Below are positions 8,171 through 42,400 of a stretch of 64,000 nucleotides of DNA, in pieces. The stretch is from assembly GCA_016748015.1 (NCBI GenBank), contig JAAOMT010000134.1, forward strand, positions 1,680,757 through 1,744,756. The letters run 5' to 3'. The notes under the pieces were generated by a model. It was not told the DNA's origin. It saw only the letters and a program-made list of their open reading frames with translations, and did not search any database. Positions within the stretch are counted from its first letter, which is position 1, and the number at the start of each line of letters is the position of its first letter. The translations under genes were made by a program, and so were the position numbers. The DNA is from Geosiphon pyriformis uo1. Taxonomy: Eukaryota > Fungi > Glomeromycota.

Positions 8171-8190
8171 NNNNNNNNNNNNNNNNNNNN
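8171..8190. other. Assembly gap (20 N)
   Basis: Run of N. Confidence 1.
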
Positions 8191-10458: not shown

Positions 10459-10504
10459 TATAATCCAACAAAAAACCAGCACCAACAAACAACCAGCCAA
10501 AACA

Positions 10505-15744: not shown

Positions 15745-15758
15745 TTATTTCCTCTTTT

Positions 15759-16394
15759 TTAATATTGAGCTCCATTGAAATTTTCATTTTGAATTAATTC
15801 TAATACTTTTTTTTCAAGTATTGTTTGTTTGACTCTGTTTCTTATGTTTTCTATTTGTGTATTGTTTATTCTTCCCCATTGGTTAATGGTTATGGTTTCC
15901 ATGTCAAAGTGTAACAGTATTTTGGGATAGTTCCGAAATATGTTGTGTAGTCAATACATGGTTTTAACATGTAATGTTGAATTTGTTTTCTTTCTAATAA
16001 ATTCTTTAATTTGTTGTATTATGTCTTAGTTGAATATTCTTTTGGATTTGTTGATATACAACTCCTGAATATTCAACTTTTGATCTAACTGATAGTAGCA
16101 ATATGATATTGGAAGTTGTTCTGTCCATTGCTTCCAATTTTTTTTTGTAAGCTCTTCTATTGGTGCCATAATAGATATTTTCCCAAAAGTGTTTTTCACT
16201 TTTTCTATTAAGTTATTTGTCCAGTTTTTATCATTCTTTGGTGGCTGCTAATATGGTGTATTCTTTGTCTTTCTTTGGGTGTTTTGATAGCAAATTATTT
16301 GGTTGTTAATAACAATTTCCATGTTTAACTGTTGTTGACTTAAGGCCTGAAACAATTGTTGAGTTATAGTGTGAATATGATTTGGTATTTCCAT
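15759..16394 (-). pseudogene. E4 accessory ORF3 (212 codons)
   Basis: MEIPNHIHTITQQLFQ...ENFNGAQY*; homologous to 33704-34338. Confidence 0.75.
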
Positions 16395-16448
16395 TTTTTT
16401 TGGCTGCTTTTGTTATGTGTACTGTGTCTTTATATACTTTTTGGTTGT

Positions 16449-17814
16449 TCAATTTGACGTGTTTGGTTCAATAACTATAATTGGTTCCAGATCTCATGAA
16501 ATCTTATCTGGTTGAACTAGTATTTTTTGTACTCCCAGTTGTGGAATATTATTGGTAGATGATGATACTATCTGGTAATATGGTTTCAGTCGATCACCAT
16601 GTGCTGCTTTGGCTAAAATTTTGTTGTCTCATCTTAATTAATAAGCTCTATTTCCTAGAATTTCTTTTATGTGAAATAATCCATTCCATTTGGGGTCAAA
16701 TTTTCCATTTTATTGTTTTTTTGCTTTGGTACAATGTAATAGTACTTTGTCTCTAATCTTGAATTTAACTGGTTTATCCAGTAGTTGGTTATCATGTTGT
16801 TTTTTTTGCTTTTTTTATGACTTTTAGATGTTATTAGATGCTTTTTATTGTCTGTTTTCTAGTGTTTCCATTAAGTCATATGTTCTTTTCAACAATGTTT
16901 CTTGGAAATTATCTTCTGTTATTGGTTCTGTTGGATATGTTTTAATTTCTATTTCAACTGGTAATGTTGTTGTTCTACCATATACCAATTCAAATGGTGT
17001 TGCTTGTGTGATATCTTGCTTCATTGTCTAATAAGCAAATAATACTGATTGTATAATTAAATTCTATTTGTCCTGGTTTTTTTGGGTAATTTTGGCTATT
17101 GCTTTACACAGTATTTTATTAAATCTTTCAACTAAGCCATTCATTTGTGGATGATATGGTAATGATAATGGTCTTTTAATTCCAAATCTTTGACTTAATT
17201 CTGTCAATGTTCTGTTCACAAAGTGAGTTTTTTGATCTGATAGTAGTTCTTTTGAACATCCATGTCGACAAATCAAATCTTGATGAATGAATTCAGCAAC
17301 AGATTTTGCATCTGCTCTTTGAATGGCTTTTGCTTTTAGCCATTTAGTGAAATAGTCCATGGCTACTGCAATATATCTGTTGCCTTTACTGGTAATTGTT
17401 AATGGTCCAACTAAGTCAATTCTAATGCAATCAAATGGTTGTCTTACTTTGATTGGTCTTAATGGTTCACTGGGTTTTGTTCCATTTCTTCTCTGACAAG
17501 CATCACAATTTTGAATGTATTGAATGATGTCCAGATACATTAATGGCCAATAATATCTTTTTTTGGTTCTTTCTATGGTTGCTTCTTTGTGAAAGTGTCC
17601 TGCTGTTAAATCTGAGTGCATGTTGAATAATATTGTTTTTTTCTCTGGTTGGTTGCTCTGAATTTCTTTTGTTCTTTTGGTAAAGTATATTTTGATGGTT
17701 GATAAAATATTTTGATTGTTGTTTTATGTTCTTTTGTTTCTTTTGAGATAATTTCTCCTTGAACAATTGGGTATTTATATAATGTTGTAGTTGTTGGTAT
17801 TTTTGGATATTCAT
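16449..17814 (-). pseudogene. E4 integrase, separate ORF
   Basis: MNIQKYQQLQ start; MHSDLTAGHF..CDAC, IDLVGPL, SDQKTHF, NGLVERFN. Confidence 0.9.
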
Positions 17815-17843
17815 TTTTTGTTATATTTTTGGGTTGAAATGTT

Positions 17844-20800: not shown

Positions 20801-23800
20801 GTGGTGGCAAGGCTTGCAATAATAGTGGGTTCACATCTAGTAATCTTCATCTGGTGCAACCCAAGCTCTCATAGAAGAAAGTTTCTTCCCACAGTTCTTG
20901 TATTTGAGAAGTATATATGGTGGCTTCTTGATCAGTTCTCATGAGTATTCTCTTTCCCCACCACTAGTTATTTCTTCTGTGGTGGTAGTTCCTTTGGTTA
21001 TATCTTTTTCTTTTTTTTTTCTTTTTCCTTTGTCAGTTTCTTCCCATTCCCAGATTGGTAGTTTGTTTGAGTTGTTGTTGGTTTCCCAGTTTTGGTTGGG
21101 GTTTCAGGTAAGTTCTTTCTTCTGCTTTCTTTTGTTGTTGTTATCTCAAGAGAGTATTGGTGGCAACTTATTGTGGTTTTTATCAGCCCAGACTACTTAA
21201 TAGGCTTTCCAGATAGGTTTTTTTTCTTCTTTCTCAAACTTAATAAGAGGTGTTGACATGTTGGTGGTTTTGAAATGGCCACACGTGGCTAGTACCCATA
21301 TGTGTCGACCATTCTAGCTGAATTAGAGCTCTTGCATGTTTCAATCAAGTGTTGCATTGGTTTTGGACAGCCAGTCATTGCCAACAAGTGCTTAATATTG
21401 AGTGGCTTCCATGACTAATACTTTGATTGGCATGATGATGCTATTGACTTCTATAGGGAAGTCATCAATCTCACCAATCAGAGTTTTGATTATTCCATCA
21501 ACTGTAATGATTTGTGCACTGACAGCTCGATTAACTCAGTGACCTAATTGGTCCATGAGTTGTCTTGTAATGATGCTGCCAGCTGATCTACTGTCTAAGA
21601 TTAGTTTGATTAAGTGGCCATTAACTTTGGCATCAGTGTACATAATGGTAATAGATTTTTCTTTGAAAGCAGCTCCACTAAATAATGGCGTGGCTAACAG
21701 TTTTTCGAGTTCAAATGGAAAAATAGTGTCTAGTAATTCATTCTTGGTGATGGTAGTTGCTGGTAAGTGTTGCTTGTTGATTGGTTTTTGGATTATTGGG
21801 TTGGACATCTTCTGGAGTAACCAGGAGACTTAAATAGTTCTGGGAACTCAGGTTTTGAGTATATCCAGTTCCTGAACTCCACTGTTATAATCCAGACAGC
21901 TGGTTGAATGAACTGGGAATCAGTTGGTAAACAACTATCACCGATCTCCAGTTTTGGGTAACTCTCAATCTAGGGTTTCTTGATGTCATTTGAGCTGAGT
22001 TTGATGGTGGTATTTGAACTGTGGGTGTCTGATAAATTATTTGTGGCTGCAGTGGTTGATATATTATTGGTGTCTGTAGTTGATAAACTGGAGGTTAATA
22101 TATAGATGGTTGATATATTGGTTGTTGTGTCATTGACAGGTAAGTTGGTTAATATGGTGCTGGATTGGATTGGTAACTTGGAGTTGGAAACCGGCAATTG
22201 GGGTTTTGATATTGATTTCCCAATCATTGGTTTTTTATTTTTGACTGACAATCAATTCTCAAATGTCTTTGTTTACTACAGTAGTGGCAGATATATGTCT
22301 TTTGCTGCCATGACTGATTGGATAATGATGAGGAATGTGACTAATTTTGTGGATGATTTGTGATTCCTAAATTATTGCATTGTTGGGGTGGTTGATAAAT
22401 TGTGCAATTGTCAGTTAAATACCCTTCAAACTTCTGGTTAATGAAGTCACTGAATTGTTTCAATTTGGAATCCAATTCAGATGATCCATTCATCACTAGA
22501 TTTATGGTTTGGGCATGGTTAGCTTCGAGTTTGGCTGCTTCAAAATCTCTGGTATTAGTAACTGTGGCTTGAAGATCTGCTGGGTGCATTGGACATATGT
22601 ATTGGAGGATGCTACTATGCAGACCTCTAATAAACTGATTTAGGATTTGTGGTGCTGTGAAATAATCAGCTTGAATTGCTTGTATTTGGTACAGATTTCT
22701 ATGGAAATGTCCTAAGTATGTAGTAACTGCTTTATTTTTTCTTTGCTTGATAGTGATAAAAGTGTTTGCCAATTGATTGATGCTATTATTATTACTAAAG
22801 TATTATAGGAATGCAAGCTTAAATGCATTGAAATCTTGGAGTTTGTTGGCTAAGCTTTGATACCATAAATTGGTAGTATCTTGGAAAAAATAAGGGATGG
22901 CTTGAAGGGCTCTCGCATCATTCCATCCGTTGGCCATGATGGCCTTTTTAATGTCATTGAGCCATATTTGGGTGTTATCTTTTTCGCCTGTGAATTTTTT
23001 TAGTTTCACTATTGGAGCATAGGCCATTGGATCTAAGTTCAGTTGTTGTTGTTGTAGTGGTTACAGTTGTTGTTGTGGCTATTGAAGTGGCTGTTGAGGT
23101 TGTTAAAACAGTAATTGAATAAGTTGCTGAAGGAATGGCTGTAGGATTGGTCCTAATATTGGTACAATTGGTGGTTGATTGATGATAATTACTGGGGGTA
23201 AGTTTTGCTGATTAATTGTTTCGGGTTTTGTATTGTTCAGATTTTAAGGAGTTTGAAAGTTTGGAGTTCCAATTTTCGGATTTTCTAACTTTGGATTTTG
23301 CTGAGTCTGAAAGTTCAGGATTTTAATATTTGGGTTTTCTGGAATCAGATTCTAATAAGTAAATTCTTGATCTTCAGCTTCTTTTTCCTCTTTTTCTGAT
23401 TCTGTTATCTCCCAGGGATTTGTGTTTTTGAAATCTGGTTGAGGTGGCAGTGATCAGAATCCTAATAGTATTGGGGATCATAATTTAAATCTCTCAAAGT
23501 AGTCACTGTAAGTTCTTAGTAATTCTGTTTTTTTTTGTTTACTTTGAAATAAGAGTTGGCCAAATGTTAATGTCATGTGTGATGTGGACGTGCTTGTTGA
23601 TGAGATGTTGATGGCACTTCCTAGTGTGTAATGGTATGATGAATTGGTTGGTGATTCAACTCTGGTTTTCTTCCAAGTAGGTAGTTGTATTTGTTTTGGT
23701 GTTACTGCTGGTGTTTGCAATTTTCCTTTGCCTTTGTCTGTGAAGGTGATGGAGAATTGTTGTTGTGTGTATCTTTTAATGGTTTGATTAATTTCTCTGA

Positions 23801-24050
23801 TGATTGGTGTGAAACTGTAGTTTCTTAATAAGCTGGTATGTTGAAATAATTCTGTATAGAAATTTTTTCTTGTAAATTCAGTGTTAACTGTTTCTCTTAA
23901 ACAGTCTGTGATTTTATTATTGACGTAGAAGTTAAAGGTAGATTCTGCTGGGAAGTAGTTATTGTTTAGTCCTAATTGTTGGCTGTACTATTGAAACAAA
24001 GATTTAGCAAATCCTAAATGATTTGCTCCTATGTTTTCTGATTCTGCCAC
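17844..24050 (-). pseudogene. E4 polyprotein ORF0-Gag-PR-Cys-rich-dUTPase-RT-RNase H
   Basis: ORF track fragments: Gag 22341-23027, PR 21536-21808, dUTPase ~19620-20015 (TARGIQGFGSTS), RT 18117-18977. Confidence 0.9.
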
Positions 24051-24112
24051 TTTTGGATAATTGTTGTTGGTGCTGATTCTCTGTAAAATTATACCTTACA
24101 GAAAGCACTAAA

Positions 24113-24979
24113 TGTTACAGGTGATTATTTGGGTCTCAAATTAAATAACAAAACCCATAACTTGGTGCTCAGTAACTAATTTGGTGGATGGTGTTGGTAA
24201 TATTGGTATGTTGTTATTATTTGATGGTGTGATTTATCTGAAAATTTTGTTGTTGAGTTCTTTGTATAATGGACAGAGATTCAATTGTTGTCTTTTCAGT
24301 AGCCTCCCAGAATTGCAATTCCATCAAATTTTTTTCTCAGTGTGGTGGCTGGTAATCTGACAGAGATGTTCTTCTGGTAAGCTATCTGTTAATATATATA
24401 AATCCTATACTCTTCCTTTGGGGTCTTTTACCAGACTATCCTTAACATTAATAACTCAGTGCTTAATTCTCAATTAATTAGTAAAACAAAGAAATAGAAG
24501 AAAATAAAAGAAAATAAACAAAAATAATTACAAGTTAGTATTCTATCAATAACTGTGATCAAAAGCTATTGTTCCAGTGTAATTAAGTATCAATTACTAT
24601 CAACATAAAGTGTTGATAGTGGAAAGTAGATTTGAGATGAAGAATAATTATTTATTGATATTTGTGAATTGGAAGGTTGCTTAGATGAAATCTAAACTAA
24701 GAGGTGTGTCTTTTCTACTTCTAATGCTATCACTATATATACATAATTTGGGTTTTACGAGATTGCTCACATTCTCAAGCAATGTGCTATAATTTCTTAA
24801 GCAATGCTCACATTGTTGAGCAATGTGCCATATTTTTTTGACATTGCTCTATATTGCTGAGTGATGTACCATGATTTCTGACATTGCTCTATATTGCTGA
24901 GCAATGTGCTCATGTGCTAACTACTACTCTCTTATTGGTCTACTATTTTTCTATATTTGTTTTCTTTTTATGAGTAACA
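24113..24979 (-). repeat. E4 5' LTR
   Basis: Direct repeat of 14876-15744; PBS adjacent. Confidence 0.95.
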
Positions 24980-25063
24980 CCAGTAAAAATGAATTTGGCA
25001 GAATTGATATTATCTAGCATTAGATCAAGACTTGAGATGTGATGCCAATTAAACAAAGAGTAT

Positions 25064-25930
25064 TGTTATTCATAAAAAGAAGACAGATATAGAAAATAGC
25101 AGACCAATAAGAGAATAGTATTTAGCACATAAGCACATTGCTTAGCAATATGGAGCAATATCAAAAATCATGACACATTGCTTAGCAATGTAGAGCAATA
25201 TTAGAAAATTAGAGCACATCACTCAGCAATGTAAGCATTGCTCAAGAAATCATAGCACATTGTTTGGAAATGTAAGTGATCTCGTAGAACATCAATTATA
25301 TATATATAGTGGTAGCATTAGAAGTAGAAAAGAAAGAATTCTTAGTTAAAAGACCTCTCTATTTAGATTTTATCTAAGCAACTTTCCAAATCACAAATAT
25401 CAATAAATAATTATTCACTATCTCAATCCACTCTCTACTATCAACATGAAATGTTGATAGTAATTGATACTTAACCATACTGGAACAATAGCTCTTAATC
25501 ACGGCTATTGATGGGATACTAACTTGCAATTGTTTTTTTTGTTAATTTCTTTATCTTTTTTTATTTTCTTTTATTTCTTTTGTTATTTCTTTGGTTTTAC
25601 TAAAATTGATTAAGGATTAAGCATTGAGATACAGACATTATAGGGACTAGTTACAGACCCATGAAACAAGGGTAGAACACTCATAGATTTGAGAATAGCT
25701 TACCAGAAGAATTACCAGCCACCACACTGAAAAAAAAATTTGACAAAACTGCAGTTTTGAGAAGCTACAGATAAAATCATCAATTAAATTTCTGTCCATT
25801 ATACAAAGGACTCTATTCTAAAACCTTTAGATACAACCAATGTATTAGTGTTATCAGCCTTGTCAAGATATTGAGTGCCAAGTTACGGATTTGTTATTTG
25901 ATTTAAAACCCCAAATAATCATCTGTAACA
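25064..25930 (+). repeat. E5 5' LTR (GAGCAATGT-type U3)
   Basis: TGTTATTCATA...TGTAACA; CCAAT box and TATA-like (TA)n. Confidence 0.95.
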
Positions 25931-25989
25931 TTTGGTGCTCCCTGTAAGATATAATCTTACAGAGAACCAGCACTAACAACTAATTAACA

Positions 25990-28900
25990 GTAGCAGAATC
26001 AGAAAGTATAGGAGTAAACCATTTAGGATTCGCGAAATTCTTATTTCAACACTACTGTCAACACTTAGAATTAAATCACAATCATATATCAGTAGAATCA
26101 GCCTTCAATTTTTATGTCAATGAAAGAATTGCCTATTTGTTAGGGACATCAGTAAACACGGAATCAGCAAGAGAAACTTTCTACTATGAATTAATACAAA
26201 ACACTAGCTTACCAACAAATCATAATTTCGCATCCATCATTACTGAGATTAACAAAGAAATTGAACATCACACACAACAAAGATATCCAATTACTTACTC
26301 AAGTAAAGACAAAGAAAAACTACAAACACCAGCAGTAACACCTCAATAGATCCAACCACCCACTTGGAAGAAACACAGAGTTGAATCACCCACAAATCTA
26401 TCATATTATTATACTTCTGAAAGTGCCATCCATATCACATTACCAAACATGTCCACATCAAATATGACATCAACATTTGGACAATTTCCATTCCAAAATA
26501 AACAAAAGAAAACAGAATTACTAGGCCCATATGGCAAATATTTCGAAGGATTTCAATCACAAACACCAACACCATCAGGAATCTGATCACCACTACCTCC
26601 ACCAGATTTCGGGATAGCTGATCTATGAAAAGCATCAAAATCAAAAGAAAAAAAAAATTTGAGGATCAAGAATTTACTTATCAGAACCTAATTCCAGAAA
26701 ACCCAGAAGTTGAAACCCCGAACATTCAAACTCCGAAAAATACAAATCAAGAAAATCTGAAAATCAAAACTCCAAATATTCAAATACCATGGAATCGGAA
26801 TATTTTAAACTCCAATTTAATCAATCAACCAAACTTACCTTCAAATATCATCATAAATCAACCACCAATTGAACTAATTATTGAACCAATTCAATAACAG
26901 CCACTCTAGCAACCAATTCAACACCCACAACAGCCAATTCAACAGCCACCAGTACTACCTTTACAGCAACAACAACAACCCATGGCATTTGTACCAATCG
27001 CGAAACTTGAGAAGTTCACCAGCAAAAAGGACAATGCCCAGGCATAGATCAATGATGTCACCAAAGCAATCACAGCAAATAACTGGGATGACCAAAGAGC
27101 CCTCCAAGCAATTTCACACTTTCTCCAGAATACTGCTAATTCCTGGTATCAAAATTTAGCAGCCAGACCACAAACCTTTCAGGAATTCAAACTGGAGTTT
27201 TTGAAATATTTCAGTAATAATAATAGTATTAATCGCTTGGCCAACACTTTCATTACTATCAAATAAGGAGAAACTGAAGCAGTCACCACTTATCTGGGAT
27301 AATTTCATAGAAGTTTGCGACAGATTCAAGCAATCAATGCTAACTATTTTACAGCACCACAAATCTTCAACCAGTTTATCCATGGCCTGTGCAGTAGTAT
27401 CTTGTAGCATGTACATACATTGTATTCCAACACTCTTCAAGATGCAGTTATACATGCCAGAGATTTCGAGTCAGCAGAGTTAGAGGCCAATTATACTCAA
27501 GCTGTAAACCTAGTGATGAATGGACTATCTGAACTGGATTCCAAATTAAAACAATTCAGTGATTCAATTAATCAGAGATTAGAAGAATACTTAGCTAACA
27601 ATTGCACAATTTATTAGCCATTTCAATGACGCAATAATTTAGAAATCACAAATCACCCAGAAAATCAGTCGCATCTCTCATCATTCTTCAATCAGCCATA
27701 ACAGCAAAAGACACATATCTGCCACTATTGTGGTAAACAAGGACATTTGAAAATCAATTGTCAGTTAAGAATAGAAAACCAATGATCGGAAAATCAATAT
27801 CGAAACCCTGATCGCTGGTTTTCAACTCCAAGATATTAATCAAACGCAGAAATATATCAACCAAATTACATACCTATGACACAGCCACAAATTTATCAGC
27901 TGCCAATTTATTAGCCAACAGCACCCATCATTTATCACCCACAGTCTCAACCCATTTATCAGCTGCAGTCTCAGGTAATCTACCAGCCGCAACAAGTTCA
28001 AACATCACTGCAGAACTTACCTCAAAACGGAACTCAAAGGCCAAAACTGACACTGCAAAGCTGAAGATCATCAATGGTGGTCCATTAACCGATCTCCAGT
28101 TCCATGGCACAACCATCAAGTTTTTGACAACAGAATTTGGGTACCAGTTCCACCCAAAATCCGAATTCCCAACACTATTTAAGTCTCTTGGTTACTTCAG
28201 AAGATGCCACCTCCCACAACTCAGAATCCAATCAACAACTATTACTTACTAGTAACATACCTCCAGCCACTGTCACCAATGACAAAACATTGGCTGCCAT
28301 ATTCCCTTTTGAACTCAAGGAAACCACAATGGTACCACTATTCAATAGAGCCACCTTGAAGGAAAAACCCATCATAGCAATGTACACTAATGCGAAAGTC
28401 AATGGCCACTCCATCAAACTGATCCTAGATAGTGGATTAGCTGGCAGCATTATCACAAGACAATTCATGGATCAATTAGGTTGCTGAGTTGATCGAGCTG
28501 CTAGTGCAAGAATGATTACTGCCAATGGAGCAACCAAAACTCCTATTGGCAAAATTGACAACTTCCCTATAGAAGTCAATGGCATAATTATCCTAATCAA
28601 AGTACTAGTCATAGAAGCCACTTAGTACCAAGCACTAGTTGGTAATAACTAGCTCACCAAAACAAATGCCATCCTTAATTGAACCATTTAAGAGTTGTAA
28701 CTTAGCCAAAATGGCTAATACACATGAGTACTAGCAACATGTGGCCATTTTGAACCCAGTCACATGCCAGCCCCACTAATCGACTTGGAAGAAGAAAAGC
28801 TGAAACCCATCTGAGAAGCATACCAAATGTTGTGAATTAATGTCAATTACAATGAACTGCTGCCAATACTCATCTGAAATGACAATGACCAAGAAAAGGG

Positions 28901-31900
28901 AAAAAAAAAAGAAGAACTTATCTGGAACACTGACCAAGCCTGGGAAATCAACAATGATCAAGAAGACCCATCAACCTGAGAGTGGCAGGAAAGCAATTAA
29001 GAAAAAGAGAAGAAAAACGAAGAAAACCGACTTGAAACCAACAAAACCAACAAAGCCAGCACTAGTAACTGGAGAAAATCCTACTCAACCAACACCAGAC
29101 CAGAGCCACTGCATATTCCTCTCAAGTGCAAAGACTGCAACAAGAAATTGTCCTCAATGAAAGCTTGGATTACACCATACAAAGACTACTGGATGCACAC
29201 CCATTACTATTGCAAACCATGTTACTGCAAACACTATAAGTACTCCAAGAGACAAGGCAAGTGGGACAATAAATCATGTTTCACTTGTGGAAAACAACTG
29301 CTCGATAAAGGGATGTGAAATGACATTCTTGGTAGAGAAGAAATGTGTGACACTTTGTGCCAGTACACAATCTTCATCAGTGACTGGGTGAATCGTGGAA
29401 CACCCATTACAGCAGCCTGGTACCAAGCAATCTTTTACTTAGAAGATTATCCACATGACGAGGACAAGATCTGGCAAATGGCCAATGCCAAAGTAGAAGG
29501 CACTTTGCCCAGTAAAATTCTGGAAATCAAGAACAACCCTCCAGAACCAACAGACATTGTGTTGGTTCTCAACCCAGATATCTTTTTCGACTTAGAAAAC
29601 AGCCCAAAAGAATTCCATAAACACAATCAAAATCTAGCACCTACAAGAGAAGAGTAAGAGCAACGTTTGGAAAAAATCAATATCCAATTATGTGACCACT
29701 GTTTAATTTCATGTGACTTCCAATTCTGTGATGATTGTGATCTCATTTACAATCTACTACCATGTATAATCTACATGATCTTAGAAGAAGAAAAACCAAT
29801 CAACAGCTGCACATTGGAATCAGAATCAGTTTTCAATCCTGATTCAAACTCTGACAACAACAATAACAAAAACACCAGTTTCAGTTTTGTTCAAAACAAC
29901 AATGAAAACAACAGCAATTGGAACTCCAATTCAAACCCAGAAATATATATCGCACTTCTTAATCTCACCAAGGAGCAGACCTTAAAATAGTTCAGTGATA
30001 ATGAGGAAAAGATCATGCCAGAATGTGCACATGATACTGATGTTGGGTTTGATCTAAGGTATTCAGAGAAAAATGTCATCAAATTGGAGCCACGTTTGTG
30101 CACCTGTATTGATCTGAAAATAGCATTGGAAATACCAGCAACAACCATAGTTCAACTAGCTTTCAGAAGTAGTTTAGCAAAAAGAGGAATTACTATAAGA
30201 GAAGGAATAATTAACACTGGATATGTAGGAAATATTATGGCAATGCTACAAAATGACTCAGAAAAGACCTATATCATAGAACCAAATGAAAAGATAGTAC
30301 AGGCAATATTCCTGCCTCTGGTTAGAATAGCTCAGTTAGTACCAATGGGAAATAGGGAAGAATTAGGGATTACTGCTAGAGGAATACAGAGATTCGGATC
30401 AACAGATAGAATAGACATACCAGTTAATATGATGGAGAAAGTGGTTATTGACAAAGGAGAAATTATCTCAACTTGTCAATCAATTTCCATTCTATCATAT
30501 GACCAGTATATGTTATATATAAAAAGAGAAGTAAAGAATCAGGCTCAGTTGTTTGAAGCAGAAACCACCATTTGTAAATTAGGAGAGATTGGACTCACTA
30601 ATCTCTACATATCAGCCAAAAGTCCCAAAAACATCAAAATTCTCATCTACAACACAACTGAAAGTATCATTGAAATACCAAAGGAAACTATTATAAGATA
30701 TTTGACCACTGAAGTTGAGGATCAACCACCAAATCACATTCCAGACTTTCTGCAACTTTGTGGATATGTTGACATCACATCACAAACAATATATGGATGT
30801 AGCAAATGTTACTTGCTTTAATCAGAACAATTAGAACAGATGAACATAGAAAATTTAGATCTATTTCAATGGATACAACTCAAGATGTTATTCAATAATT
30901 TCAATGACATCTTTGCTAGTGAAAATGAATTTGGCCAAACCAATATCATCCAGCATCAGATCAAAACTGGAGATGCAATGCCAATTAAACAAAAAGCATA
31001 CAGAATACCACTAGCTAGCCATGAGATCATTTGTCAAAAAATCAACCGGATGCTTGACAATGGGCTAATTTAGCCATCAATGAGTCCATAGTTGTCACTA
31101 ATAGTATTAGTCTATAAGAAAAATGAAAAAATCCGTTTTTGTGTAGACTATTGAAAACTGAATAGAGTAACAAAAGATGATAACTATCCAATGCCAAAGA
31201 TCCAAGAACTATTCGATGCTTTTAGAAAAAATAAATAGTTCTCAATACTGGACTTAGATAGTGGTTACTAGCAAGTAGCCATGGATCCAGCTGACAAAGA
31301 AAAAACAGCATTCACCACAAGAGAAGAAAATTTTGAGTTTGAAGTCATGCCATTTGGCTTGATGAATGCTCCAGCAACATTCCAATGGCTCATAGAAATT
31401 TTTTATACTGGATTACTATGGAAATCAGTAGTTGTATACTTGGATGACACCAATGTGTTCTTAAAAACATTTGATGATCATCTGCACCATCTCCAACAAG
31501 TGTTCGAAAGATTAAGAAGAGCTGGATTGAAATTAAATGCAACCAAATGTTTCTTTGGAAAAACTGAACTCAAGTTTTTGGGACATATAGTGAGTAAAAA
31601 TGGAATCAAAACGGATTCAGACAAGATTGAGGTAGTTAAGAACTTTCTGGTACCAACCAACTTGACAGAACTAAGAGCATTTTTAGGTTTCGCAGGCTAT
31701 TATTGCCATTTTATCAAAGACTTTTTAAAACTGGCTCAGCCACTTCACCATTTACAAACCAAGAATGTGAAGTATAAATGGACTGAAGCTCAACAAGAAG
31801 TGTTTGACACATTAAGAAAAAAGCTTATCCAAGCTCCAGTATTGATGTATTCAGATTACAACAAACCATTTATAATCACTACTGATGCATTAGGTCAAAC

Positions 31901-32240
31901 ATTGGGAGCAGTACTATCACAGAAAAGATCAGATAGAAGAGAACATCCAGTAGCTTATGCCAGTAGAAGCTTAAGTCCAGCTGAGAAAAACTATGAAACT
32001 CCAGCACTAGAACACTTAGCTATTTATTGGGCTGTTATCAAATAAAAGGAATACTTGAGTCAAAAGTTTGAAGTGTACACTGATCACAAAGAATTAACTT
32101 CAATTCAGAAACAAGAATTTGCAAACAATCACTATGCCAGATGGAAAATAAAACTTTTACTATTCAATTATACAGTACATTATAAAAAAGGAAAAGACAA
32201 TAGAAATGCCAATGGACTGTTGTGAATGAGACAAATCTAA
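25990..32240 (+). pseudogene. E5 polyprotein ORF0-Gag-PR-Cys-rich-dUTPase-RT-RNase H
   Basis: CCHC CHYCGKQGHLKINC at ~27720; LILDSG at ~28420; dUTPase 30015-30410; RT VVVYLDDT; RNase H TTDAL..VAYASR. Confidence 0.92.
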
Positions 32241-32270
32241 AAACATTTCAACCCAAAAATATAACAAAAG

Positions 32271-33643
32271 ATGAACACACAAAAATACCAACAACTTCAG
32301 CATTATATAAATACTCATTCAAGGAGAAATTATCTCAAAAAGAACAAAACAATATAAAACAACAATCAAAATATTTTATCAATCATCAAAATATACTCTA
32401 CCAAAAAAACAGAAGAAATCCAAATCAACTAATCAGAGTAATCACAGAACCAGAGAAAAAGACAATATTATTTAACATGCACTCAAATTCAACAGCAGGA
32501 CATTTTCATAAAGAAGCAACCATAAAAAGAACCAGAAAAAGATATTATTGGCCATCAATGTATCCAGACATTATTCAATATGTTCAAAATTGTGATGCTT
32601 GTTAAAGAAGAAAAGGAACAAGACCAAGTAAACCATTAAGACCAATTAAAGTGGGACAACTATTTGATCACATTGGAATTGACTTAATCAGACCATTAAC
32701 AATCACCAGTAAAGACAACAAATATATTGCAGTAGTCATGGATTATTTCACTAAATGGCCAAAAGCAAAAGCCATTCAAAGAGCAGATGCAGAATCCATT
32801 GCCGAATTTGTCCATCAAAATTTAATATGTCAACATGAATGTCTAAAAGAACTACTATCAGATCAAAGAACTTATTTTGTGAACAGAACATTAACAGAAT
32901 TAAGTCAAAGATTTGGAATTAAAAGACCATTATCATCACCATACCATCCACAAATAAATGGCTTAGTTGAAAGATTTAATAGAACACTGTGTGAAGCAAT
33001 CACCAAAATCAGTAAAAAAAACCAAAATGAATGGGATTTGTTTATACCATCAGTATTATTTGCTTATTGAACAATAAGACAAGATACTATACAAGCAACA
33101 CCATTTGAATTGGTATATGGTAGGACAATAACATTACCAGTTGAGAGAAAGGTCGGCACATATCCAATTAAACCAATAACAAAAGCTAATTTCCAAGAAA
33201 CATTATTGAGAAGAATATATAACCTAATAGAACCACTAGAAAACAGATGACAAAAAGCAGCTGATAATATTCAAAAGTCTCAAGAAAAGCAAAAAAAACG
33301 ACACAATAACCAATTACCAGATAAACCAGTTGAATTCAAGATTAGAGACAAAGTACTTCTATATCATACCAAAGTAGAAAAATAATAAAGTGGAAAATTT
33401 GACCCCAAATGGAATAAACCATTTTACATAGAAGAAATTCTCGGAAATAAAGCTTATAAACTAAGATAGGACAACAAAATTTTAGCCAAAACAGCACATG
33501 ATGATTGACTGAAACTATATTACCAAATAGCATTATCATCTACCAATAACATTCCACAATTAGGAGTACAATGAATATTAGTTCAACCAGATGAGATTTC
33601 ACGAGATCTGGAACCAATCATAATCATTGGACCAAACACATAA
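32271..33643 (+). pseudogene. E5 integrase, separate ORF
   Basis: Own ATG 30 nt after the RNase H stop; HHCC and DDE motifs; ends LEPIIIIGPNT*. Confidence 0.9.
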
Positions 33644-33703
33644 AATCAAACAATAAAAGAGTATATAAAGACACAGTATATGTGACAAAGGCAACCAAGA
33701 AAA

Positions 33704-34338
33704 ATGAAAATACCAGATCATATTTATGCCATAGCTCAACAATTATTCCAGGTCTTAAGTCAACAATCTTTAGACATGGAAATTATTGTTAACAACCAAA
33801 CAATTTGTTATCAAAACACCAAAAAAAAGACAAAGAATACACCATATCAGTGGTTACTAAAGAATAATAAAAACTGGTCAGATAACATAATAAAAAAAGT
33901 AAAAAACACTTTTGGAAAAATACCTATTATGGCACCAACAGAAAAACTTACAAAAGAAAATTGGAAGCAATGGACAGAACAACTTTCAATATTATACTGT
34001 TATTACTAGTTAGGTTAAAAGTTGAATATTCAGAAGTTGTATATTGACAAATCCAAAAGAATATTTAACCAAAACATAATACAGCAAATTGAAAAATTTA
34101 TTGAAAAGAAGACAAACTTGACACTACATGTGAGAACAATTTATTGACTGCACAACATATTTCAGAACTATCCAAAAATATTGTTATATTCTAACATGGA
34201 AACCATAATCATTAATTAATAGGGAAAAATGAACAATACACAAGTAGAAGATGTGAAGAACAGAGTCGAACAAACAATACTTGAAAAAAAGTATTAGAAT
34301 TAATTCAAAATGAAAATTTCAATGGAGCTCAATATTAA
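33704..34338 (+). pseudogene. E5 accessory ORF3
   Basis: MKIPDHIYAIAQQLFQ...ENFNGAQY*; stop abuts the PPT. Confidence 0.75.
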
Positions 34339-34351
34339 AAGAAGAAGATAA

Positions 34352-35258
34352 TGTTACTCATAAAAAGAAGACAGATATAGAAAATAGCAGACCAATAAGA
34401 GAATAGTATTTAGCATATGAGCACATTGCTCAGCAATGTGGAGCAATGTCAGAAATCATGGCATATTGCTTAGCAATGTAAAGCAATGTCAGAAAACATG
34501 GCATATTGCTCAGCAATATAGAGCAATGTTAGAAAATTAGAGCACATTGCTTAGCAATATAAGCATTGCTCAAAAAATCATAGCACATTGCTCAGAAATA
34601 TGAGCAATCTCATAGAACATCAATTATATATATATAGTGGTAGCATTAGAAGTAGAAAAGAAAGAATTCTTAATTAGAAGACCTCTCCATTTAGATTTTA
34701 TCTAAGCAACTTTCCAAATCACAAATATTAATAAATAATTATTCACTATCTCAATCCATTCTCTATTATCAACACTTCATGTTAATAGTAATTGATACTT
34801 AACCATACTGGAACAATAGCTCTTAATCATGGCTATTGACGAGATACTAACTTGCAATTGTTTTTTTTGTTAATTTCTTTATCTTTTTTTATTTCCTTTT
34901 ATTTCTTTTGTTATTTCTTTGGTTTTACTAAAATTGATTAAGGATTAAGTGCTGAGATACAGACATTATAGAAACTGGTAAAAGACCTGTGAAACAAGGG
35001 TAGAACACTCATAAATTTGAGGATAACTTACTAGAAGGATTACCAGCCATCACACTGAGAAAAAAATTTGACAAAACTGTGGTTTCAGAAAGTTATGGAT
35101 AAAACCATTAATTAAATCTCTGTCTATTATACAAAGAACTCCACTCTAAAATCTTTAGATACAACCAATGTATCAATGTTACCAGCCTTGTCAAAATATT
35201 GAGTGCCAAGTTACAGATTTGTTATTTGATTTGAGACCCCAAATAATTATCTGTAACA
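34352..35258 (+). repeat. E5 3' LTR (one extra 40-bp U3 unit versus the 5' LTR)
   Basis: 907 bp versus 867 bp; direct repeat. Confidence 0.95.
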
Positions 35259-36502
35259 GCATATAAAGTACCACCAACCAGCCATAAAATCATTCATTAA
35301 GAAATTAACCAAATGCTTGACAATGGGTTAATTCAGCCATCAATAAGCCCATGGTTATCACCAGTGGTACTAGTTCATAAGAAGAATAGAAAATTCTGCT
35401 TTTGTGTAGATTACTGGAAACTGAATGAAGTAATCAAAAAAGATAGCTATCCAATACCAAAGATCCAAGAGCTGTTTGATGTTTTTGGAAGAAAGAAATG
35501 ATTCTCAACTTTAGACTTAGACAGTGATTACTGGCAAGTAGCTATGAAACCAGAAAATAAAGAGAAAACAGCATTTACAACTTGAAAAAAAAATTTTGAA
35601 TTTGAAGTAATGTCATTTGGCTTAATAAATACTTGAGCCACTTTCTAGTGACTTATGAAAATTGTTTATACTGGGCCACTATAGAAATCAGTAGTTGTAT
35701 ACTTGGATAACACCAACATGTTTTCAAAAACATTTGATGATTATTTGTATTATCTCTAACAAGTATTTGAAAGACTCAGATAAGCAGAATTAAAATTGAA
35801 TGCAACTAAGTGTTTCTTTGGAAAAACTGAACTTAAGTTTTTGGGACATATTGTAAGCAAAGACGAAATTAAAACAGACCCAGATAAAATTGAGATTGTC
35901 AAAAACTTTCCAATACCAAATAATCTTACAGAATTAAGAACATTCTTGGAATTTGCCAGATACTACTATCACTTTATCAAAGACTTCTTCAAAATAGCTC
36001 AACTATTACACCAGCTCCAAACAAAAAACACCAAATATAAATAGACAGAAACTCAGCAAAAAGCTTTTGATACATTAAGAAGAAAGCTTATTCAAGCTCC
36101 AATATTAATCTATCTGAATTATAGCAAGCCATTTATAATCACAACAGATACATCTGGTCAAGCATTGGAAGCAGTATTATTTCAGAAAAAATTGGATGGA
36201 CAAGAACATCCAGTAGCTTATGCCAGTAAAAGCTTAAGTTCAGCTGAAAAAAACTATAGAACTCTAGCACTGGAACATTTAGCAATTATTAGATTGTTAC
36301 CAAATGGAAAAAATACTTGAATCAAAAGTTTGATGTGTATACTAATCATAAAAGATTGACTTTGATCCAAAAACAAAAATTTGGAGATGATTGCCATGTC
36401 AGATGGAAAATAGAACTTTCACTATTTAATTATACAGTACATTATAAAAAAAGAAAAAAAAATGGAAATGCTAACAGATTGTTGCAAATAAGACAAGTCT
36501 AA
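35259..36502 (+). pseudogene. E3 RT-RNase H
   Basis: SPWLSPVVLV, FCVDY, VVVYLDN, TTDTSG; ends QIRQV*. Confidence 0.9.
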
Positions 36503-36532
36503 AAACATTTTAACCCAAAAATATAACAAAAG

Positions 36533-37909
36533 ATGAATATACAAAAATATCAACAACTCCAATATTATATAAATACTAAATTGTTCAAGAAAAAATTATC
36601 TTAAAAAGAACAAAAGAACATAAAACAACAATCAAAATATTTTATCAATCATCAAAATATACTTTACCAGAAAAACAAAAGAAATCCAGATCAACCAACC
36701 AGAGTAATTACAGAATCAGAGAAAGAGACAATATTATTCAACATGCACTCAGATCCAACAGCAGGACATTTCCATAAAGAAACAATCATGGAAAGAATCA
36801 GAAAAAGATACTATTGGCCATTAATGTATTCAGACATTATTCAATATGTTCAAAGTTGTAATGCTTGTCAAAAAAGAGGTGGAACAAAACCCAGTGAATC
36901 ATTAAAACCAATCAAAGTGAGACAACCATTCAATTGTATTGGAATTGACTTAGTTAGACTATTAACAATTACCAGCAGAGGCAACAGATATATTGCAGTA
37001 GCCATGAACTATTTCACAAAATGGCCAAAAGCAAAAGCCATTCAAAGAGCAAATGCAAAATCCATTGCCAAATTTGTTTATCAAGATTTGATTTGTCAAC
37101 ACAAATGTCCAAAAAAACTATTATCAGATCAAGGAACTCACTTTGTAAATAAAATATTGACAGAATTAAGTCAAAGATTTGAGATAAAAAGACCATTATT
37201 ATCACCATATTATCCACAAACCAATGGACTAGTTGAAAGATTCAATAGAACATTATGTGAAGCAATTACCAAAATCAGTTAAGAAAACCAAGATGAATGG
37301 GATTTGTTTATACCATCAGTATTATTTGTTTACAGAACAATGAAACAAGACACTACATAAGCAACACCATTCGAATTAGTATATAATAGAACAGCAACAT
37401 TACCAGTTGAAATAGAAGTCAAAACATATTCAACAGAACCAATAACAGAAGAGAATTTTCAAAGAACATTGTTGAGAAGAACATATGACTTAATGGAGAC
37501 ATTAAAAAACACATGGTGAAAAGCAGCTGATAACATCCAAAAGTCACAAGAAAACCAAAAAGAAAGACACAATAACCAACTACCAAAGAAACCAGTTGAA
37601 TTCAAGATTGGAGACAAAGTACTTCTATATCATACTAAAGCAGAAAAACAATAAAATAAAAAATTTAACCCCAAATGGGACAGACCATTTCACATAGAAG
37701 AAATTCTTAGAAATAAAGCTTATAAATTAAGGTTGAACAACAAAATTTTAACCAAAGCAGCACATGGTAATCAACTAAAACAATATTACCATATAGTATC
37801 ATTATCTACCAGTAATATTTCACAATTAGGAGTACAGAGAATACTAGTTAACTCAGATAAGATTCCACAAGATCTAGAACCAATTATAATTATTGAACTA
37901 AACACATAA
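36533..37909 (+). pseudogene. E3 integrase, separate ORF
   Basis: ATG at 36533; MHSDPTAGHF..CNAC; SDQGTHF; QTNGLVERFNRTL. Confidence 0.9.
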
Positions 37910-37969
37910 AATTGAACAATCAAAAGAGTATATAAAGACATGATATATGTGACAAAAAACAGAAAAAAA

Positions 37970-38599
37970 ATGAAGATTACTAATGACATTTACTCACTAG
38001 CACAACAACTTTTTTAACTGATCCAACAACAAGAAATGGAAATTACAATCAACCAACAAACTATTAGATACACAAACATCAAAAAAAGACTATGAGATAA
38101 AATATGGAGAAAAACAAAAAACACTGTGAACAAAATAATCACAAAAGTGAAATTGGCAATAAAAACACAACCAAAAGTTACCCAATATCAAGAATTGACT
38201 ATAGAAACTTGGAATTGGTGGATACAACAATTTCCAAAAAACTTTTGTTACTTTTACTTGGGACAACACTTGAATATTCAAAGTTTGTATACAGATAAAA
38301 CAAAATGATTATTTGACACAACAATACTGCAACAACTGGAACAATTTGTGGGGAAGAACAATTTGACTACACAAGCCAGAGCCATCTATTGGCTACACAC
38401 CATATTTCAAGATCGACCAAAAATCTTACTTAATTCAGAAATAAACTCTATTATTATTAACCAAATAGAAAAAATAACCAATGCTCAATTTGAAAAATTA
38501 CAGAACAAGATAGCACAAGTCATTCTTGAAAAAAAAGTTCAAGAAATACTCAAAAATGGAAAATTAGAATTAGGAGATCTCAACAGAGCTTAATATTAA
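37970..38599 (+). pseudogene. E3 accessory ORF3
   Basis: MKITNDIYSLAQQLF...QARAIYWLHTIFQDRPKIL...; diverged homolog of E4/E5 ORF3. Confidence 0.75.
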
Positions 38600-38613
38600 A
38601 GAGAAGGAAATAA

Positions 38614-39439
38614 TGTTACTCATAAAATATAGGAAATATATTAGCATATAAATTAGCCAATCAAAAGTAGCCATAGTAAATGTGAAATTCCAGGATTTCT
38701 TTCAAAAAAATTACAAAATTCCAGGAATTTCAGGATTCTTGTACAAGGAATTGCAAGATTCCAGAATTCCAGGATTCTTTTCAAAAGAATTACAGGATTT
38801 CTGGTGTGAAGAATTAAGAAATTAAGGAATCTCAATTATGTATATATATCAGTAGCATTAGAAGTAGAAAAAAAGAGACCTCTTAGTTTAAATTTGATCC
38901 AAATAACCTTCCATTTACAAATATCAATAAATAAATATTCACTATCTCAATCTATTCTTTACTATTAACACTTCATGTTAATAGTAATTGATACTTAACT
39001 ACACTAGAACAATAGCTCTTGATCATGGCTATTGATAGAATACTAACATGCAAATCATTTTGGCTTATTTTTCTTATTTTCTTTTTTTGCTTTATTTTCT
39101 TTATTATTGGTTAGCTTAATTAAAAGAATTTACACACAGAGATACTAACATCAAGATATAACACTGGTAAAAGATCCAAGAATAAAAGTAGACACTTGAA
39201 ATTAAGAATATCTTACCAGGAGAATTACTGGCCATCATACTGAGAAAAAAATTGACAAAACTGTGGTTTTGGAAAGCTACAGATAAAATTATCAATTGAA
39301 TCTCTGTTCATTATACAAAGAACTCAACAAAAACCTTCAGAAAAACACATCTTCAGATATCCTTAAACATTTAAATCAATTAAGCACCAAGTTACAGATT
39401 TGTTATTTGCATTGAAACTCCAAACAATTACCTATAACA
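38614..39439 (+). repeat. E3 3' LTR (GGAATTC-type U3)
   Basis: Follows PPT gagaaggaaataa; TGTTACTC...ATAACA; not followed by a PBS. Confidence 0.93.
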
Positions 39440-42400
39440 ATGCCCAAAAGTATCATCAATATAACATTAACAAGCACATCTACAGCAAATGCAACAACAC
39501 TATTAAACAGAATCTTGTTCCAAAGTAAACAAAAGAGAACAGAGTTATTAGGAACCTACAGCAATTATTTTGAGGAATTTAAATTGCAATTTCCAATGCC
39601 ATCAGAATTTTGATCACTATTATCTAAACCAAATTTCAAAAATGCTACTCCTTGGGAAGTAACAGAATCAGAAGAAAAGGAAGACAAAGATCAAAAATTT
39701 AATTATCAAAACCTGATTTTAAAAAACCCAAAAATACAAACTCTAACTGTTCAAACTCAGCAAAATCTAAACAATCCAATCACTACTTCTATTGTTTACC
39801 AAAACTTATCTTCAGTAATCATAATAGACCTACCAATTATCCCAATTGCCAAACAGTAATAATAACAGCTGCAACTACCACCTTAACAACAACTCCAATA
39901 GCAACCACAATCACAACAACAACAATTACCAGTAGTACTAATGGTATATGTACCAATTACAAAACTTGAGAAATTTACTGGCAAGGAGAATAACATGCAA
40001 GTATGGTTCAATAATATGGAAAAAGTCATTGTAGTCAATAAATAGAATAATATTAGAACATTATAAATGATTCCATATTTTTTTCAAGATACTGCCAACT
40101 TATAATATTAAAGTCTAATTCAGAAACCTCAAGACTTTAACATATTTAAACTGAAATTTCTAAGATATTTTAGTAATAATAATAGCATCAATTGTTTAGC
40201 AAATACTTTTACAACCATTAAACAAGAAAACACTGAAGCAGTCATCACTTATCTAAGATGCTTTCATAAAAATCTGTACCAAATACAAACAATTAACACA
40301 AATTACTTTACAGCACCACAGATTTTAAACCAGTTTATCCATAAGTTATACAATAGTATTCTTTGGCACATATATCCAATACACTCACAAACTTTCTAAA
40401 ATGCAGTTATCCACACCTGAGATTTCGAATTGGCCAAGCTAAAAGCTAATTATGTCCAAGTCATTAATCTAATAATAAACAGATTATCTGAATTAGACTT
40501 CAAGTTAAAACAATTCAGTAATTCCATTAATCAAAAATTAAAGAAATACTTAGCTAATAATCAGACAATTTATTAACCATTCCAATGCCACAATAATCCA
40601 GAGAACTTGGATAGTCTTTAAAATTAACTATGTCTATCATCAACAATCAATCAACAGTGATAACAAAAAATGCATAACTGCCACTATTGTGGTAAACAAA
40701 AACATTTACAATTTAAATGTTGCAAATAGTTAAGTAATCAACAATCAAGAAATCAGTATTGAAACCCTAATTACTGATTTCAAACCCAGAATTATGTCAG
40801 TAATCAATCACTCAAACAATATGAATATCAGCCTTATTACTTTCAAATAATGCAGCCAATTTATCAAACACCAAACTATCAAAACTCAGCACCAATAATC
40901 TATTAGCCACTCCAATTTTAGCTAATTTATCAATCTCAACCAATTCAAATCCAGTTTCAAAACTCACCTTAAACCAGAATTCAAAGGCCAAAAACTATTC
41001 AGATTAAACAGAATTGGAAATTGGCAATAGTAATGTACCAATCAATTCCCAGTTCCTCAAACCAACTTTTGAGATCATGGCAATTAATTTCCAGAAATCC
41101 AGAAAATCACTACACCCAAAACCCAAATGTACAGAACTATTTAAGTCTTTTGGTTATCCCAACAAATATTTTATTTTATAACCCAGAATCCAACAACAGT
41201 TCACTCATTAATAATATTCCACTAGCAACAGTTACCAAAGACAAATCATTTGCAGTTATATTTTCTTTTGAAATAAAAGAACCAACCACTATACTACTAT
41301 TCAGTAGAGCTGTTCTTAATACTAAACTTATTACTGCCATGTATACTGATGCCAAAGTCAATAGCTATTCTATCAAGCTAATCTTTGATAGCAGTTCAAT
41401 AGGCAGCATCATTACATGACAACTTATAGACCAATTAAGTTGCCAAGTTAATCAAGCTGTCAGCACTAGAATTATCACAGTAGATAGAACAACAAAAACT
41501 CCAATTAGCAAGATTGATAACTTCTTATTTAAAGTCAATGGCATTATTACATCAATCAAAGTCTTCATAATAAAACCCACTTAGTACCAAGCTCTTATAG
41601 GAAATGATTGGCTGTTCAAAACAAATACAGTACTTGATTGAACCACATAGAAGCTTCAGCTTAGCCAGAATAGTTAACATATATAAGTACCAGCTGCATG
41701 CAGTTACTTCAAACCAATTACTACACAACTACTAATAAAATTTGAAGAAGAGGAACAGAAACCTATCTGAAAAGTCTATTAAGTTTTGTAGACCGAAAAA
41801 AAGCATAATAAACTGTCACCAATACTATCATAGAACAATAATAGAAAGAGAAAAAACAAAAAAAAACCACAAAAAAACACCATTGCCAAAGTAATTACCA
41901 ATGGTTGGAGAAGATCTTATATGACCAACACCAGACCAAAGCCATTATATATTTTACTTAAGTATAAGGACTACAAGAAAAAACTGTTCTCCATAAAAGC
42001 CTAAGTTGTGCCTAATAAAGATTACTGGACATATACACACTATTACTGCAAATCATGCCACTGTGAATGTTATGGCTACTCAAAAAGACAAGGAAAGTAA
42101 GACAACAAGCCATGTTTTACTTGTGGGGAAACTCTATTTAACAAAAAAATATGGAACAATATTCCTGGTTAAGAAAGAATATGTGATGCTTTATGTTAAT
42201 ACATAATTCTCATAAGTAACTAGATAAGTTATAAAACACCTTTTACCACTGCATAGAACTGAGCAATCTCATGCTTAGATAGTTACTCACATAATGAAGA
42301 TAAAATCTGGTAAATGGCAACTGCCAAAGTCAAAGATGCATTACTTAGCAAAATCTTGGAAATTAAAAACAATCCACCAAAACCAGTTGAAACTGTCTTT

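Follow-up and report, generated by a model that had tools for sequence, protein, structure and literature searches.

In Ty1, Ty3, Tf1 and the retroviruses, integrase (IN) is the tail of the Pol polyprotein. Stop-restart translation is known from other systems, such as the non-long terminal repeat (non-LTR) element SART1, which has a UAAUG junction, and the caliciviruses, which use a termination upstream ribosome-binding site (TURBS); we know of no LTR retrotransposon example of such termination-reinitiation. A UAAUG stop-restart junction is also found in CHV1, a hypovirus that infects a fungus (PMC2699510). In the Postia placenta element PosPlaTy3-5, a dUTPase lies between protease (PR) and reverse transcriptase (RT), and dUTPase-bearing LTR elements also occur in Phanerochaete chrysosporium and Tuber (Tmt1), as cited in PMC2864245. 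The bdelloid rotifer elements Juno, Vesta and TelKA likewise have a dUTPase between PR and RT, no chromodomain and a variable third open reading frame (ORF3), and Juno has an extra zinc knuckle near the dUTPase (PMC5408684). Here, we describe E5, a 10.2-kb LTR retrotransposon at positions 25064-35258 of a 64,000-nucleotide (nt) stretch of the Geosiphon pyriformis genome (hereafter, the window), where it is nested in an older copy, E2. We consider it highly probable that E5 is a dead, nested copy of a Ty3/Gypsy element from a clade, carried at least partly by Glomeromycotina, that is tricistronic and encodes IN separately, with reinitiation as the proposed route to its translation.

Both ends of E5 are located by the LTR pair and its flanks, exactly where an earlier reading of the window, made from its letters without database searches (the sequence-only reading), had placed them. 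The features of the element, all on the forward strand, are as follows:

25060-25063, +, left target-site duplication GTAT, one C/T transition from GCAT on the right; the flanking DNA is E2
25064-25930, +, 5' LTR (TGTTAT...GTAACA), 867 bp, from self-BLAST and reading of the sequence
25933-25944, +, primer-binding site (PBS)-like site TGGTGCTCCCTG, 2 nt past the 5' LTR
25990-27044, +, N-terminal extension of Gag (earlier 'ORF0'), starting at GTA, which is GTG in other copies
27048-27614, +, Gag capsid domain (Pfam Retrotrans_gag, E = 1e-5; the relative L001, described below, also matches Ty3_capsid)
27915-28250, +, low-complexity linker rich in Q, Y and P, from the translation, with equivalents in L001 and a second relative, L010
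28389-28700, +, aspartic protease with LILDSG (Pfam Asp_protease_2 / gag-asp_proteas; stronger in L001, E = 6e-10)
29100-29987, +, Cys-rich module, with CxxC...CxxC clusters and a conserved middle part
30009-30404, +, dUTPase domain (Pfam PF00692, E = 1.9e-17 in E5, where the motifs are degraded, and 1.9e-21 in L001)
30408-30818, +, module X (earlier 'dUTPase-like'), ~110-135 aa, predicted to be beta-rich, conserved across three sublineages
30822-31778, +, RT (Pfam RVT_1, E = 3e-22; YLDD motif)
31779-32222, +, RNase H (RH) and RH-IN connection, to '...NGLL' (Pfam RT_RNaseH_2, E = 1e-29, and RT_RNaseH)
32238-32240, +, ancestral pol stop TAA, from alignment of E5, E3, E6, E2b and E1 (all copies in the window)
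32271-33643, +, IN cistron, with conserved ATG, HHCC, DDE core and GPY/F-type motif (Pfam Integrase_H2C2 and rve)
33704-34351, +, ORF3, decayed in E5, 221-234 aa when intact, running into the polypurine tract (PPT)
34337-34351, +, PPT AAAAGAAGAAGATAA, abutting the 3' LTR
34352-35258, +, 3' LTR, 907 bp, beginning TGTTA and ending GTAACA
35259-35262, +, right target-site duplication GCAT, which pairs with GTAT

Decayed genes were searched in pieces or read with X at stop codons. The Pfam order in E5 was Retrotrans_gag, aspartic protease, dUTPase, RVT_1, RT_RNaseH, Integrase_H2C2 and rve. The expected marks of a Ty3/Gypsy element were all present: TG..CA LTR ends, a PBS by the 5' LTR and a PPT by the 3' LTR, Pfam matches ordered PR-RT-RH-IN in both E5 and L001, and matches to RVT_1, RT_RNaseH_2, Retrotrans_gag and Ty3_capsid, with Gypsy-type polyproteins as the closest proteins. 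The earlier description holds in that the element is of the Ty3/Gypsy type, lacks a chromodomain, and comprises three cistrons plus additional modules. E5 itself is a dead copy. The frame of its first cistron (ORF1) has 38 stops in 1867 codons, with 115 and 135 stops in the other two frames.

The family plan was read from natural, better-preserved relatives, L010 and L001. A HMMER search with the dUTPase+X piece against 1.8 billion representatives returned mostly Geosiphon fragments, the exception being a 1064-aa protein from an ENA metagenome contig, L001. This contig carries a near-intact 11.3-kb element with LTRs ~96% identical in ungapped blocks and no target-site duplication (the flanks, ACGG and ATGC, do not match). 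Its pol frame is interrupted by only ~14 stops, the majority being TGA at sites of Arg codons in relatives, which is what deamination of CGA would produce. L010 is a Geosiphon locus with a younger copy of the second family in the window, that of E1; its LTRs are 95% identical and it has a perfect ATGC/ATGC duplication. More distant relatives include L007, with a PR-dUTPase-RT-RH layout; L008, without a dUTPase; L011, in which gag-PR-RT-RH form one intact ORF of 1321 codons, alongside an IN ORF of 428 aa and a third ORF of 155 aa; and L003-L006, one intact element from four JGI metagenome samples, in which the dUTPase is located after RH.

The junction between RH and IN is the most informative part of the element. 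A TAA stands at the same codon, directly after LSR[IM]RQx, in E5, E6, E2b, E1, L010 and L001 (by nucleotide alignment for the window copies), and E3 keeps it with a 1-nt deletion beside it. E5 has an additional TGA at 32223 and a second conserved TAA at 32262. IN then opens with a conserved Met, M-[DEN]-x-[EQD]-x-Y-x-x-[LI]-x-x-Y-[LI], which is the first residue in all lineages. The IN start lies 2 codons past the stop and in frame with RH in L001, 10 codons past the stop and beyond the second conserved TAA in the E5 family, and 67 nt past the stop in E1. In the relatives, we found TAA+12 nt+ATG in L007, TAA+24 nt+ATG in L012, TAA+2 nt+ATG (UAAcuAUG, with IN in a different frame) in L008, TAA+113 nt+ATG in the intact L011, where the spacer has stops in all frames, and a UAAUG overlap of the RH-side stop and IN start in the intact L003-L006. 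Thus, a TAA followed by an ATG was seen in eight lineages, at spacings from overlap to 113 nt, and the stop was TAA in 8/8. Since intact elements carry the junction TAA and the IN ATG, the split IN is not a product of decay. The sequence-only reading had taken the plan to be ancestral, and the same TAA and IN start in E5/E6/E2b, E1/L010, L001, L007, L008, L011 and L012, with UAAUG in L003, agree with this.

The IN of E5 has a 4-nt deletion just past the ATG and 5 stops (2 adjacent), and the change of frame from RH to IN in E5 is due to this private deletion. The C-terminus of IN carries a GPY/F-type motif (WDGPFYI in L001, WNKPFYI in E5). Pfam scans covering IN pieces from E5 and the C-terminal part of the L001 IN detected no chromodomain (PF00385), the single other C-terminal match being a weak one to SH3_Tf2-1 (E = 0.01). 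Two candidate features of this region were rejected. An apparent C-terminal frameshift shared by E5, E3 and E2b was an off-frame tblastn artefact, and IN continues in frame to the TAA at 33641. An intron over the pol stop was also considered; its GT..AG is not conserved, and its excision would break the frame.

The distribution of the split was examined in an RT-RH tree of 104 rows (protein search matches plus element copies; IQ-TREE quick search, LG+G4). E5, E3, L010 and L001 group together with an SH-aLRT support of 99, nested in a 37-row group with a support of 83. IN is not part of the same ORF in 29/30 database proteins of this larger group, 24 of which end 1-9 residues past RH. By comparison, 60/66 of the other rows (animal-type 297/K02A2.6-like and others) are IN-fused, and P0322, a chromodomain-bearing, IN-fused protein, is placed just outside the split-IN group. 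The 90% cluster of one member of the split group includes a protein of Cetraspora pellucida, which shows that the group occurs in Glomeromycotina. The split IN is not peculiar to the 'complex' family but characterizes a wider clade, in which simple PR-RT-RH elements are also found. One protein of the split-IN clade, P0381, has a NUDIX domain (PF00293) instead of the dUTPase, the capture of another nucleotide-pool-cleaning enzyme.

In this anatomy, cistron 1 encodes a single long Gag-Pol and ends at the conserved UAA, a few codons past the RH-end 'LSR'. Cistron 2 is IN, opened by the conserved AUG up to ~110 nt downstream, and cistron 3 is ORF3. We propose that IN is made by termination-reinitiation on the genomic RNA, in which ribosomes would halt at the UAA and resume translation at the AUG close by. 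We infer this from the stop, which is always UAA, the conservation of the AUG, the varying frames and the short but variable distance. Such a mechanism would yield less IN than RT, and IN would never be within the protease-processed polyprotein. In the E5 subclade, the layout of the 5' end of ORF1 (see below) suggests GUG initiation of Gag-Pol, with ORF1 beginning at a conserved GUG. Otherwise, the element should replicate as Gypsy-type elements do, with tRNA-like priming at the PBS, particles built of Gag, processing by PR, the action of RT/RH, and staggered cuts of 4 bp made by IN. The Cys-rich module may bind zinc, and the dUTPase may hold down dUTP while cDNA is synthesized in coenocytic hyphae and spores that divide slowly. 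Limiting the incorporation of uracil into the cDNA of non-dividing cells has been proposed for retroviral dUTPases, as cited in PMC2864245. The combination of a clade-wide tricistronic layout, IN production by coupled UAA...AUG reinitiation and a GUG start of Gag-Pol in the E5 subclade is put forward tentatively, as a possible but far from assured whole.

Could the three ORFs simply be an artefact of decay, the active element having had a canonical gag-pol with fused IN and having acquired its stops by C>T changes? E5 does have its 38 in-frame ORF1 stops and shifts frame between RH and IN (at its private deletion), and the observed/expected ratio of CpG in the window is 0.17. We nevertheless regard this as very improbable, because the same TAA and ATG occur in eight lineages, including intact elements that are unchanged in several metagenomes (L003-L006, L011), because CpG deamination of CGA gives TGA and cannot give TAA, and because 29/30 clade proteins stop after RH. 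A Pol-IN fusion produced by readthrough of the stop codon (where the frames agree) or by frameshifting (elsewhere) fits only some members, and we judge it improbable. The IN ATG is in frame with RH in L001, L007, L012 and the ancestor of the E5 family, but IN lies in another frame, behind a stop-bearing spacer, in L008, L003, L011 and E1/L010. Moreover, no stop other than UAA, generally the least leaky of the three, is found here, two in-frame TAAs are conserved in the E5 family, and every lineage keeps the Met as the first residue of IN.

The main rival has IN and ORF3 translated from subgenomic RNAs, produced by splicing or internal initiation, as in the case of retroviral env and foamy-virus pol. 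The 113-nt spacer that precedes the IN ATG of L011, closed by stops in all frames, speaks for this, as does the position of ORF3, 60-700 nt past the IN stop; these distances are awkward for coupled reinitiation. However, the junction has no conserved splice donor or acceptor (a candidate 49-nt GT..AG interval present in E5/E3 is absent in E6, E2b, E1 and L001), and the start lies ≤30 nt from the stop in most lineages and overlaps it in L003. On this evidence, we find expression from subgenomic RNAs doubtful, though a serious contender. A different kind of alternative is that Repbase, Dfam or GyDB already contains a curated entry for the family or for the entire split-IN clade (e.g., as a Glomeromycotina 'Gypsy-N'). 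Glomeromycotina genomes have been repeat-annotated and dUTPase-bearing Gypsy elements have been published, but full-text searches of the open literature turned up no account of a Gypsy element whose IN has a cistron of its own, of reinitiation in an LTR element or of a dUTPase element from Glomeromycota. Prior curation is thus rather unlikely in our estimation.

Several points weigh against the proposed scheme of stop and restart in a split-IN clade. The scheme rests on sequence anatomy, and a separate subgenomic or spliced IN/ORF3 mRNA would explain the same anatomy. Reinitiation past a 6-kb ORF is normally inefficient in eukaryotes, and a stop-start spacing that ranges from overlap to 113 nt is wide for classical coupled reinitiation. 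All copies in the window are dead, and L010 and L001, on which the plan is based, also have some stops. The support for the 37-row group is only moderate (83, from a quick search), one member of the group, P0301, is IN-fused, and the protein sample consists of sequences of 585-1862 aa selected by similarity to one query. Finally, both fold predictions (dUTPase+X and ORF3) are of low confidence.

The module order (N-terminal extension, capsid, linker, PR, Cys-rich module, dUTPase, X, RT, RH, IN, ORF3) is common to L001 and L010, and the same order is found in E1, E3, the split E2 and E6. Two diverged families in the window (E1 versus E2-E6) share one plan, and L010 and L001 show it too. The N-terminal extension is long, rich in S/T or N/T, and runs in frame into the capsid domain in L001 and L010. 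It had been read as a separate 'ORF0', but in L010 and E3 its frame is that of Gag, of which it is the N-terminal part. Its dN/dS is 0.17-0.31 in frame and 0.6-0.86 in a shifted frame. For the N-terminal extension, Cys-rich parts, dUTPase and X taken together, dN/dS is 0.14-0.42 in frame versus 0.44-1.4 in a shifted frame. Judged by these ratios, every module is under purifying selection, and the ancestral three-ORF plan with accessory modules is upheld.

The start of ORF1 has no nearby ATG in the E5 subclade. A conserved in-frame A..GTGG lies 1-8 codons past the last upstream stop, at 25990 (E5), in the 24050 region (E3, minus strand) and in the 10502 region (E2a) of the window, and at ~2739 in L010, ~5358 in L001 and 373 in L011. 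The open frame of the intact L011 reaches its first Met only at codon 186; in L003, L008 and L012, sister lineages of the subclade, ORF1 begins with ATG.

The Cys-rich module is kept in E1, L010 and L001. Across four copies, 13 alignment columns are invariant, and dN/dS is 0.14-0.22. It has no Pfam match, and a scan of JGI metagenomes gave no relative. It is missing from L007, and is thus an addition within the clade. The position of the dUTPase between PR and RT, as previously read from the sequence, is confirmed by the PF00692 match there in E5 and L001, and all five motifs are readable in L001. Module X was found to be conserved, with a dN/dS within the range given above, but its earlier label 'dUTPase-like' is unproven: alignment with the dUTPase part by hhalign gave a plausible register but no significance (E = 0.28). 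No Pfam match was found for X, and a profile of X against PDB sequences returned nothing relevant. An AlphaFold2 (AF2) prediction of the E5 dUTPase+X piece from a 67-row alignment had a predicted local distance difference test score (pLDDT) of 44, too low for use. A dUTPase-like nature of X may be entertained as a hypothesis. In L003 (positions 1-14177; GC content 51%), a 7015-bp tandem or circular-looking unit, with repeats 99.96% identical, carries gag with a -1 overlap to pol, PR, a ~170-aa stretch, RT, RH, dUTPase, UAAUG and IN. By eye, this ~170-aa stretch between PR and RT is a candidate beta-rich, X-like module.

ORF3 shows conservation comparable to that of IN, with dN/dS values of 0.25-0.35 and 0.20-0.41, respectively, in the same copy pairs. 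The ORF3 of L001 (234 aa) matched only one close relative from a metagenome and four Geosiphon proteins, each intact at 221 aa (P0390-P0393); the E5 stretch is their decayed homologue. The conserved C-terminus, ELSLEEEIMLP, is the PPT and the start of the LTR read as protein (L001, L010). No transmembrane (TM) segment was found, the maximum 19-residue Kyte-Doolittle mean being 1.1-1.2 in L010 and L001, so ORF3 does not have the membrane glycoprotein character of an env-type product (errantivirus / Athila). There was no Pfam, PDB or BFVD match, and Foldseek against PDB and BFVD gave nothing below E = 0.08. The AF2 model had a helical core but low confidence (pLDDT 50), and the ORF3 product is predicted to be soluble and largely helical. 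Comparison by hhalign of the ORF3 family with the positional ORF3 of L011 gave E = 0.31, too weak for homology. An older copy beside L010 (L010 15246-20664, minus strand) has a stop-free ORF3 of 218 codons, 66% identical to P0390, and is decayed in the rest. In L001, an additional 136-aa ORF lies between IN and ORF3 (13420-13830), its end separated from the ORF3 ATG by 2 nt; nothing in Pfam matches it, and the Geosiphon copies lack a counterpart.

The E5 LTRs are 85.9% identical (self-BLAST, 25048-25930 vs 34334-35258), and the substitutions between them consist of 75 transitions and 5 transversions. TGGTGC(T/C) is found at the same PBS position in E2a, L010, L001 and L011, and is mutated to TAGTGC in E3. 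A search for tRNA genes in the window found none, and so gave no primer candidate. The 4-bp duplication, described earlier as a departure from the fungal pattern, was seen as GTAT/GCAT in E5, with one transition, and as the perfect ATGC pair of L010. Ty3 and Tf1 make a 5-bp duplication, but 4 bp lies inside the normal range for Metaviridae and is not unusual.

The left 48 kb of the window is a pile of related LTR elements, as seen by self-comparison. Apart from E5, these are:

1-8520, +, E1, second family, cut by the window start, 87.5% identical to L010
9832-14877 (5' part) + 24980-25063 + 35259-39439, +, E2, older copy, host of E3 and E5
14876-24979, -, E3, full-length copy of the E5 family in reverse orientation, inserted in E2 (BLAST, 76% identity over 10.9 kb)
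39447-48032, +, E6, copy of the E5 family truncated at the 5' end, 3' LTR at ~47341-48032

The collinear BLAST and tblastn matches of E2 are interrupted at the boundaries of E3 and E5, and E3 is flanked by CTGG/CTGA. E3 (minus) and E5 (plus) lie head to head inside E2, 84 nt apart (24980-25063), and their LTRs form a ~900-bp inverted repeat around 25020. To the right of the pile, positions 48001-50000 are very AT-rich (17.6% GC), another RT-bearing element lies at 52686-59112 (RVT_1 at 56422-56988), and a 589-aa ORF with a terminal PHD finger at 62199-63968, on the minus strand, is probably a host gene.

The window as a whole is AT-rich (GC ~30%), with strong CpG depletion (observed/expected = 0.17), a TpG/CpA ratio of 1.3 and a TpA ratio of 0.73. 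Decay in the window is driven by transitions and accompanied by strong CpG loss, a pattern that, in sequence terms, fits methylation-linked deamination rather than classical repeat-induced point mutation (RIP). Non-CpG transitions are also common, as the E5 stops are evenly split among TAA, TAG and TGA. A 276-aa ORF within E5 is 100% identical to an annotated G. pyriformis 'hypothetical protein' and has >500 more fragmentary Geosiphon matches at 65-80% identity. The E5-type family is thus very abundant and mostly decayed in Geosiphon. Such elements fill much of the genome (>500 annotated 'hypothetical proteins'), and a true plan of the element would clean up gene annotation in Glomeromycotina.

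A dUTPase between PR and RT has already been published for PosPlaTy3-5 and Juno/Vesta/TelKA, and it is for the split IN that no description was found in the open literature; what is new is less the dUTPase than the split integrase shared across the clade. An IN encoded on its own, with a conserved UAA and an AUG close to it, points to another way of dosing and delivering integrase. If our proposal is true, this would be the first LTR retrotransposon known to set its RT:IN stoichiometry by stop-restart translation and not by polyprotein proteolysis, ORF3 would be a new lineage-restricted accessory gene, and the split-IN junctions would offer natural eukaryotic stop-restart sites for study in fungi. 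The E5 family also lengthens the short list of dUTPase-carrying retrotransposons and brings three conserved modules without known relatives (the Cys-rich module, X and ORF3).

Compared with Ty3 and the fungal chromoviruses (Tf1, Maggy, Tcn1), the E5 family shares the Ty3_capsid/Retrotrans_gag domain, the PR-RT-RH-IN order, an IN with HHCC, DDE and a GPY/F-type motif, TG..CA LTRs, a PBS and a PPT. Ty3 and the chromoviruses differ in having one or two ORFs, with IN fused to RT-RH, and in lacking the dUTPase, Cys-rich module, X and ORF3. The fungal dUTPase Gypsy elements of the PosPlaTy3-5 type share the fungal LTR plan, the Gypsy domain order and the dUTPase between PR and RT; in PMC2864245, they come from a survey of chromodomain Gypsy elements and are drawn with PR, RT, RH and Int. 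Unlike these, the E5 family has no chromodomain, a separate IN cistron, and an added Cys-rich module, X and ORF3. Juno, Vesta and TelKA resemble the E5 family in the dUTPase between PR and RT, the lack of a chromodomain and the presence of an ORF3, but they have animal hosts, their ORF3 is env-like or encodes a GDSL esterase or DEDDy exonuclease, and their IN is described within pol (PMC5408684). The ORF3 of the E5 family differs from theirs in having no TM segment and no known domain. Unlike CHV1-type junctions, that of the split-IN clade, known here from its sequence, has a spacer of up to 113 nt in L011. Like the stop-restart systems of CHV1, SART1 and the caliciviruses, the split-IN clade has a stop and a next start that overlap or lie close together, as UAAUG in L003, as UAAcuAUG in L008, and 6-30 nt apart in L001, L007, L012 and the E5 family.

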